Source: Lenisia limosa (lineage: Eukaryota; Protista; Breviatea). Taken from it: DNA of 64,000 bases. The translations under genes and the position numbers were made by a program. The notes under the pieces were generated by a model that searched no databases, had not been told where the DNA came from, and saw only the letters and a program-made list of their open reading frames with translations. This document shows, piece by piece, positions 9,700 through 41,800 of this stretch. The stretch covers positions 5,711-69,710 of the forward strand of contig LPNZ01008239.1 in NCBI GenBank assembly GCA_001655205.1. Reading direction: 5' to 3'. The first letter of the stretch is position 1. Each line of letters opens with the position of its first letter.

Positions 9700-11197
9700 C
9701 TTGGTTCTTGGATTGGTGTCAGGTATGCTGTAATAATCCTTGTGTAGGGCACCAAAGGTGGCAAGGAGTGTGGCAGGAGTGGCAGACAGGATAAGGTATG
9801 TAGTTCCAAAAAAGGAAATTTGTGAAATGATTTGGACATATATTACATGCTGTTTCTCTCTATGACAAATGATTAGGGATAATAACAGGATTTTTCTTTG
9901 GATTCTTGATGTTAATCAGGTGAGATCGTTTCTATCATGCTGAATCGGCTACAGCCTCTCTTTAGGACTGTGAACACAACCATCTTTTTTGGTCAGTGGT
10001 TATTAATATTTCAACAAGACACGGGATATGTATATGATATACTATATTATATGATATGTATATATACATGTATATGATATGTATCTGATATATAATATAT
10101 GATATCATTTATATGATGTTTAATATAATATACGATATTGATATATTTAAAAAATATATTCATATTCTAATGAAACTTCATCTATCTTCAACTTGATTGA
10201 TAGGAGGACTTCTCAACGTACCTCCCCACTAGGTTCATATTGTGTCAGAGCTTTCGCTGCCTTAAGTTGCCAGCAGTATTTGAGACATCTTCCTTACACT
10301 TTCTCAGGTAAGAATGGTGCAAATTACACCCTTGATGACAACATATCATATAATACATAATACATATAATACTTGTAATATTATGTACTATATTTTCTGA
10401 AATCACATTAGTGCGTTATCGCAATTAATCCAGCCCTGTGTTATCCTGCAGAGAGTGAGGTGACGTCCCTCTGCGAGGGAGGCCGCAACAAGGACTTCTC
10501 ACTGCCGCCACTAGAGAATCTCTCGACCCAGCCATGGCACCACCAGTTGTCCGAGGAATTCAAGCGATGTGACCTTTCATCAAGAGACCAAGGTACCAGG
10601 GCAACATTTTAGATTGATTTAAAGTCCCTTGAATAAGAAATCTGCTTTTATATTGGATAATATTCTATCAAATCATGTTAATCAGAAATAAACCTAGGGG
10701 AATAAGCACATAATACTGCGTTAGAAAATGGGAGTACGAAGAAATAGCCGCCAACCCAGCCAAAAGAATGAACTGAACTTTAGAATTCTACCCTGTTTTT
10801 ATCTAAAGGAACTCTTTTTTTTGCCTTCCACCCCATATAGTAAATATAAAGTTTGCATAACCCATGAATTCAGCACTTTTTGTTTTCTCCAACATATTTA
10901 GGGGCAATTGTAGCTCTGTTCCCGTCTTTACTCTTACAAAACGGTGCAATGCACGCGAAGGCAAAAATTGACCAACTACGTTCGACTACTTGCTGGGAAC
11001 CAGATAAGGTTGAAGGGCTCAAGTTTCCATTGTCTTGTTGATAATTATTCTAACTTATTAGATTCACAACGCCATTGTGTCGGAACCTGGATTACTGGTT
11101 CCGAATGGCCACATTTCAACACTCCAAGACCAACTCAGTGAGGATAAATCCGCTGCTCGTCAAAAAATGGAGTTGCCTGCCCTTATTGCGTTTAAGG
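9700..11197 (+). CDS. Hypothetical multi-exon protein, possibly the N-terminal part of the YgbA-domain gene; weak mTERF-like repeat
   Basis: Phase-consistent exon chain LGSWIGVR-APKVARSV...-ESEVTSLCEGG...DQG-AIVALFPSLLLQN...WEPDK-IHNAIVSEPGLLVP...LIAFK. True start not found. Family not recognised. Confidence 0.5.
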
Positions 11198-11341
11198 TGA
11201 GATTTATGTTGTTTTTACCCTTTCTCTTTTTCTTGTTCCAAGCTTTTTTGTTCTTTTGTTTTTCCTCGAAGATAAAAATGAAATCTATCAAAATATATTT
11301 GAGACGTGGAAATTATGTTATTGAAGGGCATCATTACCTTA

Positions 11342-12381
11342 ATGATTCAGGGAAACGGTAACTCTCCTCGGTTGACTTGGAACAAGCAAAAAACTGGTCA
11401 ACTAAAGGTATCAAGCAGTTTTCAAGTAATATCCCAGTACATTTCTAACCATATAGTATATATATACTAGATATGATTTAGCTATAATATGATAAGTACT
11501 AGTAAAGATCATATGGGATCTCAATTATGAAGGTGCTTGAAGAGTTCTTTCCGACCTTTTGTGACCATCATCATACTGGTATGTTAAGGGGGGGGGGGTC
11601 TTTTCTTGTCGTTCACAAATATTTACTCTCTTAGACCAGAAGAGAGCTCCTCTTGTGTCCCCTCTTTCTGACAAAAAGATGAAGAAAGAGGTTAGAAGCG
11701 TTTTGCTTTGATTTTTTACTTCTTGTTGCTATTTTCCTCTATTTTTTATTTGATATGTATGTAATATAGTAGTATATCATGTAATAGATATCATATGATA
11801 GCATATGATATCTATCATACAGTAGTATTGATTTTTCCTTCAGCGGCTTCTTTGTGAAGACTGTCAAGAGCTATTTGATTACGCATCGGGTCAACTCGCA
11901 GCATGCAAAATGAAGCCTAAACCGTGGGGAGCTTAAACAACACATGGTATTGAACATGTTCTGGGCTTCTGGTTTATTGAATTTGCTCAGTTATCTAGGA
12001 TTTTGTGAGGAGCTGTATTGCGACATACTATATCATCTACTATAATATGCATATTAGTATTTTTCATAATAGTAAATATGTCATAATACTATTGAATATC
12101 ATATCAAATAATTGAAATGGCGTAGTATGATAATCGAATACCGCATTCTTAACATGATATCACCAAATCCAGGTCCTGTAAATTCTGCCCAGACCATTGC
12201 TTTGACGAAGCTCATCGACAAAGAATGAAAGAGGTCGGAGGCGCATTTATCTGATATCCTAATCCCATTTTGGCTTTCCTCTGGACCCTTGTTCTCAAAT
12301 ATGCAGGTCATGAAGTGGACAGGAATGCACTTTGTCCGCAAGGGGCGTCTTGATTGGTGCCTAAAATATTTCATGGGGTGA
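11342..12381 (+). CDS. ygbA: YgbA-like ('nitrous oxide-stimulated promoter' family) Cys/His-rich protein with 5 internal introns
   Basis: Spliced: MIQGNGNSPRLTWNKQKTGQLK|VLEEFFPTFCDHHHT|DQKRAPLVSPLSDKKMKKE|RLLCEDCQELFDYASGQLAACKMKPK|PSCKFCPDHCFDEAHRQRMKE|VMKWTGMHFVRKGRLDWCLKYFMG* (TGA 12379-12381). All junctions are GT-AG and in phase. It carries the family pattern C..HH / LC.EC..L..YA....C / KP.C..C..HC / M..VM. Confidence 0.8.
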
Positions 12382-12630
12382 GGCTTTTTCTCTTTTTGAC
12401 ATTTTTTTCTCTTCTCTGAACGTTTTTTGGCCTTTTTCTTATTTATTATTATGTTTTCCCCAGGAGTATTTGCGATCAGAACATCTCCCCCCCCCCTCCT
12501 TTCTACTCAACTAAAAGAGAACAGGTATTAGAATTCAACTGTAGACAAGATGTGGCTGGTATTATAAACAGAACGCTAATCGCCATTCTTGACATCTCAG
12601 ACTTGGATAAACAAGGATACATAAAAAATT

Positions 12631-15600
12631 TTATTGGGGAACAACGTTATCCTCCCAATACCACTCTTCAAGATTAGCCACTGCCATTCTGGTTGTAGCG
12701 TCACGGAGTTCTTTGGTCCTTCCAATTGGGGGCGTGCAGTATTCAGCCTGCAGCGACCTGTTTTCGTTAGTACTAATCAAGCAAGAAAAAACGGTTGGTG
12801 TCAGTTACAATCTTGCCACAAACCGAACAGCCTGGTTAGCAATACGGCAAGTGGAAGTGATAAGGGCAGGGGCGGCGGAAGGATGGAGAAGACAGTGACC
12901 GGAAATGGGCCCGACCGGCGGAACCTAAAATATCAATGTTGACAACTGCCAATATCAAGGATAGAAATGTCACAGAGAGCATAGAAAGTCGTAAAAACAT
13001 CAGAACGTACCCTTGGTTTTGTATGCAGGCATGTGGGCAGTACGTGATTTGCTCGGGTTACAACAATGTGCGCGTCGTTGAACTGAAACATAACGTAACG
13101 GTCTAAGGGGATACTGAACATGATAATGGCTAATGATCAAAGTTCCCCCTCACCTGAGAAGTGATAGTGGTTGGTCTATAAGCCTCATGGTGCTCACTGT
13201 AGATGATGTGCGCAATATCGTTACCAACATGCCGCTTCTACAACACATGAGAACTGGAGATTATGCGTTAGGATTAACCAGAGAAGAGAATATGCGTACC
13301 TTGGAGATTTGCTGGGGGTCGGAGAGACTAGTTGGCATAGACGTGACAATGTGGAACATTGTCTCTTGTTGTCCGGCAGCATGGTAGTGTGAGAGACGAC
13401 CTGTCCAATCAGGATGAAAAGATGCGCCAGAAAGAAATCTCATAAAATGCTGTGGACAAGATGTTGATTCATATTTTCAGAGAAGCCGCCGCCATCATAC
13501 CAGTACTCAACTGCTGCTTGTCCAAGCCGCCAAGGAAACCTGTATGTCGACCCACGTCCACAGGCCAACCCAAACTGTCCATGAATTCACTGAAAGGTCA
13601 GATGCATCTTACAAATGTTGACATCCCCCCCCCCCCCCCNNNNNNNNNNNNNNNNNNNNNNNNNNNNNNNNNNNNNNNNNNNNNNNNNNNNNNNNNNNNN
13701 NNNNNNNNNNNNNNNNNNNNNNNNNNNNNNNNNNNNNNNNNNNNNNGGCGGCCTTGACTGGTGTGCGCGAGAATATCTGGAATATTAAAAAAGGAATAGA
13801 GCCATAGTAGAACGTGAAAAAAGAAACCCCCAACCCTTAGAAAAGACAGCAAGTAGAAAACCATTCCGGCAGACCTTGTCGAGATCTTTCCAGCGTCTCC
13901 ACGCCCGAAGAGTGTTCGAGATACCGGCGTAGGCCTCGCCACTGCGGCGTCCGGTTGACGACTGTTTCAGCTCAGCAATGGTTCTTGGGGCCGTGCGTGA
14001 GTTCGGCGCTATCGATACTCTGAAGAGGTGAGGTATATGCGCCAGGTTCGGTTTTGTTTTTTGATCGCATATTACTACCATTTGTAACTCGTTTGAGTGA
14101 TAAATAAAACATTGATTACACCGCAAAAAACCACTTTCGAAATAGAGAGAGGATTTTAAGCAATACATCAACCCACGAGATTCCCTTCGGCATTGGCACT
14201 GTTGGAATGCCAGAGTCAGAAATCGAGCCTTGGAATACCTAAAGTGTCAAATGAGGCTTTTCTCATGCGACATTGAACAACAATTCACGGTAGTGGAAAT
14301 AAATAAAAACACTTCAACAGTAGAAAAAGAGAACATTCTTAAACAGTAGAAAAAGAGAACAGGCCCTCCAAAAGAGCAGCCCAATAATGAAGGACATACC
14401 TGGGGGGCAACTCTGAGGTAATGCAACAGTGGTGAAAGGGACTGGGGTTTTGAGGGGTTCACAAGAGGCGCAGGGCAGTGGGGGATACAGTCTCCTTCGT
14501 TCATTTCCTGGTTCGTGAATCACTTTGATTCAAAATGGACTCCAACAGTACAAATAGAAAAACACCCAATGTTTCGGAGCTGGGTAAGATATGGACTAAC
14601 AGCCCATAAGAAAACAATACATCATGCTTTCTCACAACCTTCGGGCCTTGACAGTGACATGTTCGATCCCAACAAACCACGGTGCTCATGTCGATGGTAA
14701 TCTCGCCATGGTGGGGGTTGATGATGCGCTGTGGAGGCTGGAAAATGGCTTCTGGCAACTTTCCTGTCATTCTCTGGATAGTGGTGAATACCCTATAAGG
14801 AGATATATTGGAAACACAAAGATATGACCCCCCCCCCCCCNNNNNNNNNNNNNNNNNNNNNNNNNNNNNNNNNNNNNNNNNNNNNNNNNNNNNNNNNNNN
14901 NNNNNNNNNNNNNNNNNNNNGAATGTGAAAAGAGAATGGCTAAAAGTCTCAACATTTGTACACACCTATCTTCGTCATCAGCGCCGCGGCCGTACGCCAC
15001 TGGCTTCTTCTCGTCAACAACCTGGGACCATAACAATAACTTTTGGCAAAGAGCTGTAGCGACTGTCTCAGGTTGGGTGAAATTTTCACTCTCCAAGCAA
15101 ACCGTTTCTTCGGGGCAGGTATCAACAAAACCGTCCTTGTTGACCCAGGTGAATTGGCACTCGATCGACTCACTTAAACTGTCGTCTCCATCTTCCAAAC
15201 TCATGGTCTGGAAGGTTAACGGAACACTGTTAAAAGACGCGGCAAAAGAGTACGCAAGTAAAGCCTAGTTCAAGAGCTTCAGACCTGCATGGCCTCAAGC
15301 CCATCAAGTTCAGTGGTGGATCCTCGGCGCATTGGGCTGGTGTCACGGACAAGCTTCGGTGTTGACGGCAGACATGACTCAATTTCAGCCTTCAATGTCA
15401 CGATAATAATATACTATATATATATTCGGAAGTTATCAAAGCTTTCGATCGTGACATAAAGAAAAACAAGATCTCAAAGCTTTCGATAGCGTGACATACC
15501 GTTTTGAACTCGATTCTACTGAGGCCGCTTGAGCCTCTGCAGTCGACTGTCCAAGACTGGCTGAAGGGCGGGATCAGGTGTGACGGCGGCGTAGTGTCTG

Positions 15601-24781: not shown

Positions 24782-27700
24782 TTAACACTGATATTCATCA
24801 TTAATGCCTACGCTCTCATTGACGAATTCAAAAGTGAGCGCTTCGACTGGGATTGGTCTAAACTTGTAAGATTCTTTATTGGGAAAAAATTAATTTGTTC
24901 CAAGCTATTTAGCCAAAAGATTTTGAACAGAAGACATTCAAAGAGATTCAATCTCACCCGAGTTCGACGCCAACGTTGCACTTGAACTGTGCAGCTGAAA
25001 GGTAAAGGAAGAATAATTGTGATCCAGTTCAATAATCACCAAGATAGCCTTTAGGTGAGGAATCCTGACAATGAGTAATACTCACATCAGAGTCAATAGC
25101 CCTCGTTTCCCCTCACCCTAGCTTGGGAAGATGATGGTGTCGTAATATGTGACGGAGGAGGTCTGCGATATTGTTAAATATTGTACACTGATAAAAGGGT
25201 ATCCGGTGTCATACTCTTCTTCTTTTGTGGCCACAACGATGTACCGTTTGCAATGCGAAAAGCGGTGAAAAGGCACTTCTTCAGGGGCAGGCTAAAATAT
25301 CAGGATTCGAGGTCAACCAAATCTTCCAAAACTATTGCAAAAATGACCATTAATTAGGCTATACAAACGTCACCAAAAGATACCCAACTGGAGGTTGGAA
25401 GAGCTCATCATCGTCATAATATGGTAATTCAGGCATTGGTGGAGGCTCAGGGGTGGCTGTCCTACTGCATGAGAAAAAAAATTATAATGTTGTTCTTGAC
25501 AGATTAGTTTTTTCACAATCCTCCTACCTGTTTGTCATTTTGTGAGACTTTGGGGGAACAGGAGACTCAGTTCGTTGTACCGACGTAATGATCGGTGTCA
25601 CAGTACTGCTAGCTACGGCGTGAATTGCTTCATATAATACCTCATATCCACTTCGACAAGCCTCAATGATTCTCTGTTACAATGGGATAAACCCTCGTGT
25701 ACGAAAATCGGTCATTTATCATCACAAGTGGATATGGGTTAACAAATGATATACTATACTATATTATAGTAGATACTAGTACTAATAGATATTATATGTT
25801 ATAAAAAGTAGCTATATGATATGTTTTACATAAGTTTTAGCTGTGAGTCGTTTGTAAGCTGCCCTTAAAACAATTTCGTAATAAATCTATAAAGCAACCC
25901 GTACTTGTTTTCTTAAAAGGTGTGGAAGGCGAAGAAGAACCTCTTGCAACTCGGACACTACAGTATAAAGGTTTCAACAAGAAGGCCCTTGAGACCCAGA
26001 GTGGACTTACCTGTAGGGTTGGGCAGGCTCTTTTCCAAGAAGGTTTGACATGAGAGGGGATGTTTGATGGAATGACTTAAAAAATTAAAAGCTTGGAACA
26101 ATAAAATGATAACGATAACAGTACTACCTTGATAATAGACGCCCCTGGTTTCTTTCTAGTAATAACAACCTCTTTGTCTCGATATAAATCGCGAAGTTTT
26201 GGAATTTCTGGCTCACCTGAAAAGACTAAGACCACACACCATAACTTGATTACAATCGATCTTTATTAACTTAAATGAATTGTATTTCACCATCAACCCC
26301 TTCTTCCTTCCCACTTTCTGAAGCAGATTGTCTCGTGTTGATGTTGAAAGTATCCGACCTAAGAACCCTACCAATTTCCTGTGTTGTTAAACTGAAAAAA
26401 ACTTAAAAGAAATTAAGACTATTTTTACTGCTACATCGTCTCACCTGTGTCAAATCGTTCCAACTTCGTCGTGGAAAGGCTGCAAAGGAAACATGGCACA
26501 TCATATTATGTACTGTCTGAAGGTAATAAGCAACTGAAAAAAGCACAATCCCAAAAATGACCAAGTTGGACTCCAATATACAAACCTCAAAAAAGAGCCG
26601 ATCTAAAAGGTTAGAAGCAAGAGAACAAGCTCATTGCACAAACCTTCCACTATATGCCGTGGTTTTGAAAAATGGATAATAATGTGTCCATAAAAGTAAG
26701 CCAGTTCTCTGCTGAAACGTTCAACATCTCCTTCTGCTTCTTCTCTGAAACGAGTATTAAGATATTTTGAATACTGCTATAATATGAGACAACTATTTTG
26801 GTTCAAGACAATAAGCTGTTGTCTTGTCGATTTCCCACTCTGAGGCATGTCCAAGTTGAAGTATCGCTCCAAGGTAAAAGAGCCCACTCCAAAGAAATTC
26901 ATGACTAAGAGAAGTGAATACCGAAAATGCCTTCAGAACGATACTCTGAACACCATTCAGAGTCGTCCCTACCAGAGCGTTGTTCTCGTAAAACTCTCAA
27001 AAGGGCCTCTTTTAGCGTCACTTGGCATGAACATTAACGACCGGGCTGATTGGTTATTAATCCAGATCAATAGATCAATACTCACTAATAACTGCTGCCA
27101 TATTGAATGAAGGGCTCTCAACATAAGGTGACCCCTGGGTAGCCGCTACTATTGATGAGCGTCTGGTTCGCCTGAATGGTTATCTCTGTCGGTTTCTTTT
27201 CACCTAAAAAAAGAAGAATCTCTTCGATGAAGTAATAGTTTCCAGACCAAAGCGTGAGTACAAGACAAAAAGATATGATATCATAGCATATGTAGGTTTG
27301 CCTCGGTTAAAAAGACTGATTAAACATTGAGGCTTAACGAGTACTTCTCAAGACAGTCTTTTTTAGAATGATATCAAATTTACTGAAGAGATGCCAACAT
27401 TTGAGGAGTGGGTGCGGAAAGAGACGACCGTCTTGTTGCCATTCTAGGAGGCTGTAGGGCCTACTGCATTAATATGTGTGTCAAGAGCAATTATCCAAAA
27501 CACCACCAAAGATTGTTATTCTTCTAGCTTTTGTCTTCCCCAAGTTACATCGATAAAAATACAAAGGTACTAAAATTATTACATGCTGGAACCAAGGAGG
27601 AGTATTACGCCTCCTAGCTGGAACAGCTTAGAGTTTAAACGCCCGACCATTCCTGCCACGGTATTTCAAAAGCTAAACTCACATTTGATGTCAGAGGCGA

Positions 27701-31500: not shown

Positions 31501-33590
31501 CATCCCCCAGGTTGCCTCGCTCAAAGCTGAGCTTGAATCAACGAAGTCTTCTGCTGGTTTGGACAATTGGGCAGTTATTTTTGAAATGTTCATGAAACTA
31601 CGTTAAATGTTTATGATGATGTTATTGATATGATGCTCTGATAGGATCTACTATGTCATACATACCATATCATATGATATATTATGATATCAGTTCTGTG
31701 CAGATGGTATAATATTGAAATACCCTATTTAATGGTATGTATAGAAGCCGCCACTCAAAAAGCCTCTTCAAATGGTGCTGCTGCTGATGAAGATAAACAA
31801 CTGGTACGGGAAGAGCTGTACAATACACACAGGCTTGAATTTTCCCAAAGCTGTTATGACCTCATTTTTCTCACTATTATTTGCAGTTGGAAGCAGAAGT
31901 GGCACAATTGAAGCAGGCACTGGAGGAAGAAAAGGCCAAAACTACAAGTCAAGCCCAAGAGAACGACGAACTGAAGAAGGTTAGTTCCTAAATACTTTCA
32001 AAAAGCAACATTCACAAAAGGCTAACTCTATTTAGGAGGCAGCAGCTCACGACAACGCCCAAGCCAAGACCCAAGGTAGCTGGCAACTATCACCTTCGCA
32101 CTGCACTTTTTTGGCTATCTTCAAAATAGCTTATCAAACCGGTCAATAGCTCCATCATAGTACATAGTATTATATGATATACTATATGATATACTATACT
32201 ACTATATGATATATATTGTCAGATGATCTACTAGATTATATCGATATCATATGATATTATTATAATATACTACGTATGATATAATATGACATGAGAGGTT
32301 ATGGGGAAAACTTGCTTCGGTAAACTTGGTCATAACAAGGGAAGTCTCGATTACAATAAGGGGGTTTTGAAGCACTGAGAGAAGATGTGACGAATATCAT
32401 CTCTACAGCTCATGAATAGCTTTCCTGTATCAGGACATCTACTCTCCTCTTTTTTTTAAGTTTTGTACATATGATATGTATCCAATATCACAACATTGTA
32501 TCTAAATAGACCAGAGTTGGTGAGGAAATTATCACAANNNNNNNNNNNNNNNNNNNNNNNNNNNNNNNNNNNNNNNNNNNNNNNNNNNNNNNNNNNNNNN
32601 NNNNNNNNNNNNNNNNNNNNNNNNNNNNNNNNNNNNNNNNNNNNNNTAATATGTATTCAACTCTACTTTTTACTTTGCTCCGTCCCCCCCTCTCTTACAC
32701 TAAAGCTGCTGAAGATCGGGCTATCAAGGCGGAGAAGAGGGTTACTGAGCTAGAGAATGAACTCAAGGAAGCTAAGAAGGCAAAGGGTAGGCAGAGAATT
32801 ATGCCCACAATGGTGCTTATCACTTCGCAGCTCCAGCGCCAGCAAAACCTGCCTCAACTAAACCTGCCCCGGCGAAGGCTCAGTCCAAGCCCGCTCCAGC
32901 CCAGGGTAAGCGCAGACATTACTTGCAATCTTTTACGTTTTTATTTGTTGTTATTTGAAAACCTTAAATTTCAGCTCCGAAGCCTACCCCTGCTCCTGCT
33001 AAAGGTTGGTATCGCCATTGTCGTCGTGTTCCTTATTAAAAAGGAGATCATACGTTTGAAATGATAGTATTTTGAAAAGTAATATATGATATACTATACT
33101 ATAGTCATTTCATATATGCATATGGATATGATATGATATAGTATATAATATAGTATATCTAATAATTATCATATACTATGATATAATATTACATTCAATA
33201 TTATAGTAAAACATATCACATGTACATGTGTGCTTATTGAGCGTTTTACTCTCTTCCTTTTAAATGACCGTCCTTTAGCTCCCGCGCGCCCCGCTGAGCC
33301 AGTTCGTTCCAATTCTCCCCAGAAGTCTGAAACACCGGCTAAGAATGAGCAGTTCCTTTCTGGTGGGTGAACTTGGACCTCTCTCGATTCTTTCTCAACC
33401 CAGTGTATAAGTTGGAGTTACTTTTACTTGCAGTTCGTGAGCTTCTCGCCCGGGGCCGTTTTGAAAAGAAGGAAGAGGATAGCCTTCCTAAGCGTAAGGG
33501 GCTTTGCTGTTATGGATTCGCTGTAACATCATATCTCATAACCTGACAGGTCCCCCTCCCCCTCGTAAAGAGTTCCGTGGAAATTATTAA
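28519..33590 (+). CDS. Adaptor with three N-terminal SH3 domains, a long coiled coil and a Pro/Ala-rich C-terminus
   Basis: SH3-1 VVAKHRFEAQEDSDLPFVKGD...EWSLGTLNGKSGQIPMNYV. SH3-2 LRALYDFDVQEDDDLGFSEGQIIEVITSDGDWWTGKVDGKEGKFPSNYV. SH3-3 KDYEG..ESDELSMTKGD...GDWLMLTFKGREGLFP. These are followed by E/K/A-rich heptads and PAPAKP-type repeats. Stop TAA 33588-33590. Confidence 0.85.
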
Positions 33591-38840: not shown

Positions 38841-41800
38841 ATGGGGCTTACTCCCAAACAAAAGGAAGACCTCAACAAGGCGATTGTTGAGTACCTGCTC
38901 ATTTCAGGGCATAAGGTTTGCTCAAGTACTTCTACTTTATTTCTATTTCTTTTACGTGTGAGCTTTTGTATTAATTTGTGGCTAACTGGCGATGTCCTAG
39001 ATTAATGCGATCGGTCGTATCTGGCTCATGTGTGGAGAGACAATGAATCAGAGAAACCCTCCCCACAGCTTTTTTAGTTTTTATTTTACAATTCAAGGAT
39101 TGTGCGAAAGCGGTTGCTGAGGAAACTGGTGCTGAAATCCAATCAAGTTTGCCTCGGGCTGGAATTCTAGAAAGAAAATGGACCTCTGTCGTACGTTTGT
39201 CGAAAAAAGTATGTGGGGAGTGTTGTGGCTGTAATCACACTCTATGTTTTGAACCTTGTTATGTATCTTATGTTTAAAAGAGTCACCCCTCAGAATCTTG
39301 AGCTTGAAGCTGAAGTCCAACGCCTCTCTGAACAGCTTGCCTCAGCACCAAAACCAAGGTGAATTTGATAAGGATTTTTCTTTGCTTTGGTTCAAAAAAG
39401 GGAAAATGAAAGCTTTTCTTTGCATTCACTCATTTAGGGCAAAAATTACCACTCTTGGCCTCCCATCACCTCCTTCAAAGTTAGCACAATAAGGCTATCA
39501 TTCATTTTTCAATCCCCATAATTTAATGACTTCTTAATGAAATTTATTTACTTCAATGTAGAACTACAATGACAGGACATCGCTTTGCCCTAACTTCCGT
39601 TGATATTCATCCAGGTTGGGGCTGAAACAATTGGGATGTCCCTCTGTGATTTGGGACCAGTGCAGTTTGTATTGTTCCCCTTTTTATTACTCTAAAATAG
39701 TTTTTCCTATGATTGCCACTGCTGCTGAAGGGTCGGAAATCAAGATATGGGATGGAGATACCGGAGAACTTGAGAGGACTTTAAAGGTATGAGAGTTTTT
39801 CATAATCGCTTAAGAAAAAGACTGATATTGTATTGTTTTATCAAGAAAATTTATTGTGGGATAAGTGAAACCTTCGTAACACAACTGATCTTCAAAATAT
39901 GTATATGATGATATACTATATGTATACTATATATTATATATATCATATCATAGTATATATATAATAGTATATGATATACATATGATATAATATTACATAT
40001 ACTATATACAGTATATTGTTTCACCATCGTTAATCTCTCCTACCTACAGCACTGTTGCCATATTTACCTTTAAGTCGCATATGAACACAGTTAATGGGTT
40101 GGCGTTCTCTCCACAAGGTTCAGTCCTGGCATCTTGCTCAACGGATCTCACTGTAAAGGTTTGCTGATGAACTACCTTGTGTATTATAATGTTGATCTTT
40201 ATTGCTTTCGGGTGGGTGTTATGTAAAAGACTATTCACATATGATGTTGAAAAATGACACTGTATATCATGGAAACTACACTGTATTAGATGGTATTAAA
40301 TGCTATGTCACATTAATTTCAGCACTATCATTCACCATATTGATTATTGAAGCTATATCATTATTATATTGTAGCTTTGGTCCACAGAGACATTTGATAA
40401 CTTTAAAACGCTCCGAGGGCACAGTCATACCATCTCCGCAGTTGCTTTCAGTCCTTCAGGTATGATCGCAATTTTGGTTCAATAATGCAGTCAGTCTAGT
40501 TCGCTTAGCCCCACAACTTAATTTAACGTTTTTTTAGGGGGGGGAGGGGAGAGAATAATCAATTCAGAGATTTGATTTGTGTTTTCAAAACCCTGTGTAT
40601 GTCTTCGATGTGTGGTCAAAATGTTACCATTTTTTCCCTCACCCATTAGGTGATTATATTTTGTCGGCATCACGTGATGGAACCGTGCGGATTTGGGATA
40701 TTTCCACTGGCCAATGCCCAAAGACACTTTATCACCCCCAGGTTGGTTGCTCAATAATGCCTTTTGAGTTTTGATACTTTTCAACAGACAATCTAAAAAG
40801 ATGACGGAATGTAGACTTATTGACAATTAATTCAAGCATATATTTAGTTTTTCCGTTTTGGGAAAATTATTATGTAGACCCCCGAAACTGTTTGGATCCG
40901 CGCGTTGGATATTATGTCTCTTGCCCAGGAACAGGTAATTATATCAAGTGGTTTAACATTGATGTTGTGAATTGAGTGGCTAATATTAATCCTTGTAGGA
41001 GTCAGCAGATAGCTCTGTGATTGTGGCCACTGCTGGAAGCGACCATCATGCAAGGATCTGGGAAGGATCTGTTAGTACTCTCTCTTCTCAGCCAATCATT
41101 CTTGCTGGTGAGGGTTGCTTTACTGTACTTAATGTTTATTTATTAATTATTGGTTTTGGGAAGTCTCTGGCTCCTTTTTCACCTTTATAGGACATTCTCA
41201 CGTTATTGAAGATATTTGCCTGTCTCCAAAAGTGAGCGCCATTTTGTCGGATGCATACATGTAGCTATATGTTCAGTAAATGTAACTATATTTAGTATAG
41301 TGTTTTATTTTACTATCTGAACCGTGACTGTGTTTAGACATCATGCGCATTTATGCAAGCAGCCCAAGAAGCCAACCAAAAGGGTGGCCAAGCAGCAATG
41401 TTACAGTAGGAAGGGCCTACATTGTTAAATGATTGGACTTGCGTTTTTGCTTGACATTTTGTTTCACTCAACGCTAACTACCAAGATTGGCGGCTAACAC
41501 TACCTCTGAAAATGACCTTAAATTATTCAACTCATCTGAAGCTACTTCAGGTATGCTCGTTCTTCTAAAACCCTCACTATCGCCTGGTCTTAAGTTTATT
41601 TTTCTACAGGCACTTACGTCGCAACGGCTTCGAGAGACAAGACCATCAAAGTCTGGCATGTGCCCAGCAAGGAGTGTGTGTTTACTCTAAAGGGGCATGA
41701 CAACTGGGTTCGAGCCCTGGCGTGGCACCCTTGTAGGTGGATTTCTGCTTGCATTCTTAGCAAATATCCCTGACCCCTTCCAGGTGGCCGTTATTTGATA

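Follow-up and report, generated by a model that had tools for sequence, protein, structure and literature searches.

Does the breviate Lenisia limosa carry, in a genuine gene of its own, a domain of the YgbA family (PF11756, 'nitrous oxide-stimulated promoter'), and if so, from where may the domain have come and what may it do in an anaerobic protist? A sequence-only reading of the locus had proposed a complete gene of six exons and five introns, encoding 127 amino acids from an ATG at 11342, and had interpreted it as an old lateral transfer. In the window, the whole 64-kb stretch of DNA analysed here, the domain is encoded by a longer eukaryotic gene of L. limosa on the plus strand, modelled with 11 exons, 10 GT..AG introns and about 290 codons. 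We consider that this is a single expressed and spliced eukaryotic gene with a divergent YgbA domain, acquired long ago and with a putative role that relates to metal binding and nitric oxide (NO) stress, and we give this combined reading a probability of about 0.7.

The gene model is based on RNA of one public poly(A) run from the same study as the DNA, the library being labelled metatranscriptomic, as would fit a protist cultured together with bacteria. One 1057-nt RNA contig of this run displays eight GT..AG junctions directly, so that 8 of the 10 introns of the model are read in RNA and 2 are inferred; its aligned pieces match the window with 0 mismatches, and the coordinates of the contig record sum exactly to the exon lengths of the model. 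The segments 11351-11407, 11533-11578, 11635-11690, 11844-11923, 12173-12233 and 12307-12381 join in one open frame. The five introns that separate them (11408-11532, 11579-11634, 11691-11843, 11924-12172 and 12234-12306) had been predicted from the sequence and are real, all being GT..AG and all being removed in the contig, with RNA support for each of the five predicted junctions. The same contig contains three further GT..AG junctions (10592/10902, 11008/11062 and 11196/11351), which add exon 3 (10452..10592), exon 4 (10902..11008) and exon 5 (11062..11196) to the gene, and its loose 5' end matches 10275-10304 exactly, which implies a further junction from 10307 to 10452. At least four extra exons are joined in frame upstream of 11351, and the six exons described earlier are consequently the 3' part of a larger gene. 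A single open frame runs through every exon in translation, the other two frames being stop-rich. The exons had been called 'in-phase', a loose term for introns whose phases are, in order, 2, 1, 1, 0, 0, 0, 1, 0, 2 and 0. The exons have a GC content of 47%, versus 31% in the introns.

From 10452 onward the exons and their splicing are observed directly, and the gene is expressed. Exon 2 (10204..10307), which encodes an N-terminus rich in Arg, Ser and Thr, has the RNA match at 10275-10304, an open frame and a predicted acceptor at 10203/10204. The first exon and its start codon, ATG 9909, are inferred: the putative coding part (9909..9919) is followed by a donor GT at 9920, the frame is closed by a TGA at 9870 and shows no ATG from there to 9909, and the 148 extra bases of the RNA contig upstream of exon 2 would place the start of the 5' UTR probably near 9772. 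At the other end, an RNA piece (12305-12428) covers the coding part of exon 11 (12307..12381), which closes with a TGA stop, and extends the 3' UTR to at least 12428.

The YgbA-like domain occupies the C-terminal ~110 amino acids (residues ~180-290) of the ~290-residue protein. The Cys/His motifs noticed from the sequence (C.HHH / LCEDC / C / CKFCPDHC) and the C-terminal end are all present in the spliced product, which reads F-C-D-H-H-H, L-C-E-D-C, a lone C and C-K-F-C-P-D-H-C and terminates with ...RKGRLDWCLKYFMG-stop (...LKYFMG-stop). Exon 6 (11351..11407), identical to the first exon of the earlier model minus its first 9 bases, encodes the linker to the domain. Exon 7 (11533..11578) encodes the first domain helix and the F-C-D-H-H-H motif with the invariant C195, as seen in an alignment with 87 prokaryotic members, and exon 8 (11635..11690) encodes a lysine-rich insert of ~17 amino acids, which separates the first Cys/His motif from L-C-x-x-C and faces a gap in all prokaryotic rows. 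Exon 9 (11844..11923) contributes the LCxxC..Y-A..C block with C223, C226 and C240, exon 10 (12173..12233) the CxxCxxHC block with C248, C251, H254 and C255, and exon 11 a divergent C-terminal tail. Exons 6, 7, 8 and 10 are bounded by RNA junctions, while exons 9 and 11 are covered by RNA pieces.

Homology of this domain to YgbA (PF11756) is solid. BLASTP against YgbA of Escherichia coli K-12 (b2732) gives 44% identity over 50 amino acids (E 9e-13) with one single-residue gap, and the alignment crosses exon 10 and runs unbroken over the last two splice junctions. Six more members, Chloroflexota, Bacteroidota, Bacillota and Vibrio among them, match with BLASTP E values from 1e-9 to 7e-14. The spliced 290-amino-acid protein scores 53.8 bits on a profile built from the 87 prokaryotic members, a significant match to the family. 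With the PF11756 model of Pfam itself, which was run exon by exon, exon 9 reaches 15.9 bits (E 0.017) on its own against a cut-off of 25 bits; the remaining pieces are of insufficient length. Together with the RNA junctions, these matches bear out the claim that a YgbA-family domain forms part of a real eukaryotic gene that is spliced.

The L. limosa protein is at the same time a highly divergent and strongly aberrant member of the family, as judged from the alignment. The closest prokaryotic sequences reach 33% identity over 91 columns, or 46% over a 52-residue core, and the identity is approximately equal across phyla, none of them being preferred. Of the alignment columns, 30 show at least 85% conservation among the 87 members; L. 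limosa has the same residue in 16 of them and a different one in 14. The family C-terminal motif, V-M-R-x-x-G-P-R-M...H-P...R-H, is lost except for its V, M and G; where the motif has P, R, M, P and H, L. limosa has M, H, F, R and Y. The C-terminal tail is the least conserved and worst-aligned part of the domain and resembles that of none of the 87 prokaryotic members, so that the similarity to Geobacter-like homologues, which had been suggested for this tail, is not borne out. What is kept is the set of eight residues C195, C223, C226, C240, C248, C251, H254 and C255, whose columns are 99-100% conserved in the 87 members.

The retention of these eight Cys and His residues against near-total divergence elsewhere is the reason for which we tentatively propose, as one possibility, that the domain is a metal-binding module (iron-sulfur or zinc) acting when iron-sulfur proteins are under NO stress. 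The domain would be a small, mostly helical module in which seven Cys and one His hold the metal, and it would act in the response to NO or other stress on iron-sulfur proteins, by protection, repair or sensing. A serious alternative to this metal and NO-stress proposal is a change of role after the loss of the C-terminal motif: the domain would be a relic or would have taken on a new job after its acquisition, and neither the role of bacterial YgbA nor the link to NO would carry over. The change of 14 of the 30 conserved columns, including the whole GPRM..P..H, means that the ancestral activity may be altered or lost, and the 17-residue insert, the extremely long branch of the domain in the tree described below and the N-terminal 170 amino acids, which are without relatives, fit the same explanation. 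The fact that all eight invariant Cys and His residues are kept, that the reading frame is unbroken through 11 exons and that spliced mRNA is present in a poly(A) library argues, however, for selection on a metal site, and we regard a relic or a domain with a new job as rather unlikely.

The stress part of the proposal is drawn by analogy from bacteria. In E. coli and Salmonella, as the sequence-only reading had rightly stated for E. coli, ygbA is a gene without known function in the NsrR regulon, its repressor being the NO sensor NsrR (PMC2884951, PMC5320621, PMC1274295). A Salmonella nsrR mutant has 31.8-fold more of its transcript (PMC2884951); in uropathogenic E. coli (UPEC) it is among the most nitrate-induced genes and is dispensable for the NO-scavenging activity that was studied there (PMC5320621). 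Because the bacterial gene is controlled by NsrR, a role in NO or other stress may be supposed for the L. limosa domain. For a bacterial member, structure prediction gives a confident model (pLDDT 86) in which four helices make up most of the chain. A YgbA relative was found in the PDB neither by sequence nor by fold, which leaves the YgbA fold without a solved structure. We know of no NsrR system in eukaryotes. Among 80 prokaryotic ygbA loci no recurrent functional partner was found: an ABC transporter accompanies the gene in 13 related Bacillota, and the neighbourhoods otherwise consist of unrelated genes and shadow open reading frames.

As regards origin, the family is prokaryotic as far as it was sampled, in agreement with the earlier claim. 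A scan of GTDB, with one genome per prokaryotic species, found it in at least 600 species; most carriers among the species listed live as anaerobes or facultative anaerobes and come from many bacterial phyla, Bathyarchaeia and Methanomethylophilaceae being represented in addition. The neighbours of a bacterial member in the Atlas and among the AFDB clusters all belong to PF11756, with only bacterial clusters in the Atlas, and their taxa are bacterial wherever given. Every member met in these searches of GTDB, the Atlas and AFDB is prokaryotic, and no mention of a eukaryotic YgbA was found in the literature searched. A maximum likelihood (ML) tree of 88 rows (the 87 prokaryotic members, a sample biased to Bacteroidota, and L. 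limosa) over 106 columns gives the terminal branch of the L. limosa domain a length of 8.85 changes per column, the median being 0.31, and no supported clade of this tree holds the domain. Unplaced on a very long branch, the domain points to no donor lineage that could be named.

Searches for closer relatives gave little further information. Two word-based searches of 5.8 billion proteins with profiles made from the L. limosa exons only (54-173 aa and 97-310 aa) found nothing; the same profiles scored the domain of L. limosa itself with 101 and 79 bits locally. Since a match must share 5-mers to pass the prefilter, and since the profiles are jumbled, the empty searches exclude close relatives only. 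The same reading applies to exon 3, which as protein had no match in the JGI metagenomes. With E. coli YgbA combined with an exon-piece profile as query, the best 120 matches are enterobacterial clusters and are uninformative on the relatives of the L. limosa domain. A degenerate C-x-x-C-P-D-H-C-F-D pattern returned 2 matches from the JGI metagenomes, which we rejected as chance occurrences that are not YgbA-like. Paralogues of the gene were not found within the 64-kb window.

Gene transfer into anaerobic protists is well known, and the simplest and, in our view, the probable reading of the data is an old acquisition from a prokaryote by a eukaryote, a reading that rests on distribution and gets no support from the tree. 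A prokaryotic ygbA-type gene would have been acquired long ago, after which introns would have been gained, an N-terminal extension added and the sequence rapidly changed; the ten introns and the host-like composition place any transfer in the distant past. The old lateral transfer proposed from the sequence therefore stands as plausible on account of the distribution of the family and the eukaryotic processing of the transcript, and lacks a supported prokaryotic placement in the ML tree. Alternatively, the gene could be an old eukaryotic one, inherited vertically or spread among eukaryotes and lost or unsampled in most lineages. Such a history would accommodate a divergence from all prokaryotes that is far above the distance between bacteria and archaea, the absence of nesting in any prokaryotic clade and the fully 'naturalised' state of the gene, with 10 introns and a host-like GC content of exons and introns, and eukaryotic proteomes lay outside the family searches made with the spliced protein. 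The purely prokaryotic membership met in every search, the silence of the literature searched on a eukaryotic YgbA and the empty exon-built word searches nevertheless make this history unlikely, and we retain an old acquisition from a prokaryote as the preferred explanation.

Some 170 residues precede the YgbA domain, exons 3, 4 and 5 encoding most of the part that is directly supported by the RNA contig and its junctions. This N-terminal part has no Pfam match. An exhaustive phmmer search with the exon-3 stretch against 1.8 billion cluster representatives matched only long proteins in several short stretches; with no full-length match, the L. limosa protein seems to be absent from that library. 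Exons 4 and 5 (10902-11008 and 11062-11196) are weakly similar to each other and have a common motif, P-x-L-L-x-x-N-G...D-Q-L (BLASTP E 0.007), a similarity that may reflect an old exon duplication. Residues 1-38, counted from the inferred start, include 5 Arg and 9 Ser/Thr, and no acidic residue occurs before position 39. A basic, acid-free N-terminus rich in Arg, Ser and Thr is the usual look of a mitochondrial-type presequence. It is thus possible, judging by residue composition and depending on the inferred start, that the first ~38 residues target the protein to a mitochondrion-related organelle, and the extension may then serve to send the YgbA-like protein there.

The ATG at 11342, taken as the start codon in the sequence-only reading, lies within intron 5 (11197..11350), a GT..AG intron of 154 bases that is skipped by an RNA junction joining 11196 to 11351. 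It could still be used if an internal promoter within this intron gave rise to a short isoform, that is, to the 127-residue protein, in addition to the long one; the ATG is in frame with the next exon, and assembled contigs drop rare isoforms. The sole RNA contig has, however, the ATG removed by the junction, and no RNA words fall on the bin 11209-11309 (depth 0), so that we consider production of the short isoform very unlikely.

The surroundings of the gene are eukaryotic as well. Downstream, the RNA run also shows splicing of the neighbour gene, which is on the minus strand: at 12654-13239 it has three CT..AC junctions (GT..AG on the minus strand), with a word depth ~4x that of the YgbA-like gene. 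The splicing of the gene in poly(A) RNA and that of its neighbour mark the locus as eukaryotic DNA and not as that of a bacterial contaminant. Bacterial contamination or a chimeric assembly, which might be suspected with cultures that hold many bacteria and libraries labelled metatranscriptomic, is refuted by 10 spliceosomal introns that interrupt the coding sequence and are spliced out of the poly(A) RNA, by the spliced neighbour, by the one DNA contig that covers the whole stretch of the gene in one piece, and by an identity to any prokaryote of at most 46%.

A few other features of the window were recorded. The first intron (9920-10203) harbours, at 10026-10145, an AT-rich element of ~110 nt consisting of ATATGATAT-like palindromic runs, of which the window holds at least 10 copies with 72-78% identity (for instance 32171-32283, 39897-40006, 25746-25839 and 33082-33170). 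Short pieces similar to it occur in other introns of the YgbA-like gene and are touched by other DNA contigs. An origin of the introns from introners or MITEs was considered and rejected, the dispersed repeat being confined to the first intron and the others having no more than low-complexity ATATGATAT-like runs in common. A G12 run in the intron 11579-11634 (11587-11611) and a C11 run past the 3' UTR (12473-12497) pair as an imperfect inverted repeat of 25 nt, with most of the YgbA-domain exons lying between them. At 483-1016 on the plus strand lies the longest open frame of the window (177 amino acids), which weakly matches PATROL1-like TPR repeats (E 0.009) and is probably an exon of another gene; Pfam gave no match on ten other long open reading frames of the window.

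YgbA is widespread in prokaryotes, its function and structure are unsolved, and yet ygbA is among the most consistently NO-induced enterobacterial genes. The eukaryotic copy, which keeps exactly the eight Cys and His residues while nearly all else has changed, points to the putative metal site as what is essential in the family and offers a second, independent system in which the function of YgbA can be asked. Nitric oxide is an intermediate of denitrification, and the denitrifying partners of L. limosa make NO. The hydrogen of L. limosa is used by a denitrifying Arcobacter living with it (PMC12453579). One may imagine that this hydrogen-producing anaerobic protist, living beside denitrifiers, recruited a YgbA domain and provided it with an organelle-targeting extension, and that the protein senses or repairs NO damage to the iron-sulfur enzymes (PFOR and hydrogenase) of a hydrogenosome-like organelle. 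As a whole this scenario is doubtful; if true, it would give the YgbA family its first functional setting in a eukaryote. The gene adds one more prokaryote-type gene to those of the breviates, an addition of limited value in that neither donor nor function is established and in that such transfers into anaerobic protists are familiar.

Compared with bacterial YgbA, such as b2732 of E. coli K-12, the L. limosa domain is collinear from the first helix to the V-M-[RK]-x-x-G turn and has the invariant seven Cys and one His in common. It differs in size (~290 amino acids in L. limosa, 100-130 in the bacterial proteins), in the 170-residue N-terminal extension, in the 17-residue insert, in the replaced C-terminal motif and in the ten introns. 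Longer bacterial forms do exist; one of them, a 263-residue fusion of a YgbA domain with DUF454 (PF04304) from Bacillota, in an ESM Atlas cluster of 92, is a possible functional lead. The partners of ygbA in the NsrR regulon, hmp, ytfE and hcp-hcr, are derepressed together with the bacterial gene under NO (PMC2884951, PMC5320621) and have no sequence relation to YgbA. The nearest parallel among eukaryotes is the SMS iron-sulfur system of breviates, which was laterally acquired (bioRxiv 10.64898/2026.01.29.702055). SMS has a known function and a phylogeny that supports the transfer, unlike the L. limosa YgbA-like gene; both are, on the reading of an old acquisition from a prokaryote, prokaryote-derived genes in a breviate, and the YgbA-like gene is prokaryote-type, fully intronised and may carry an added N-terminal targeting sequence.
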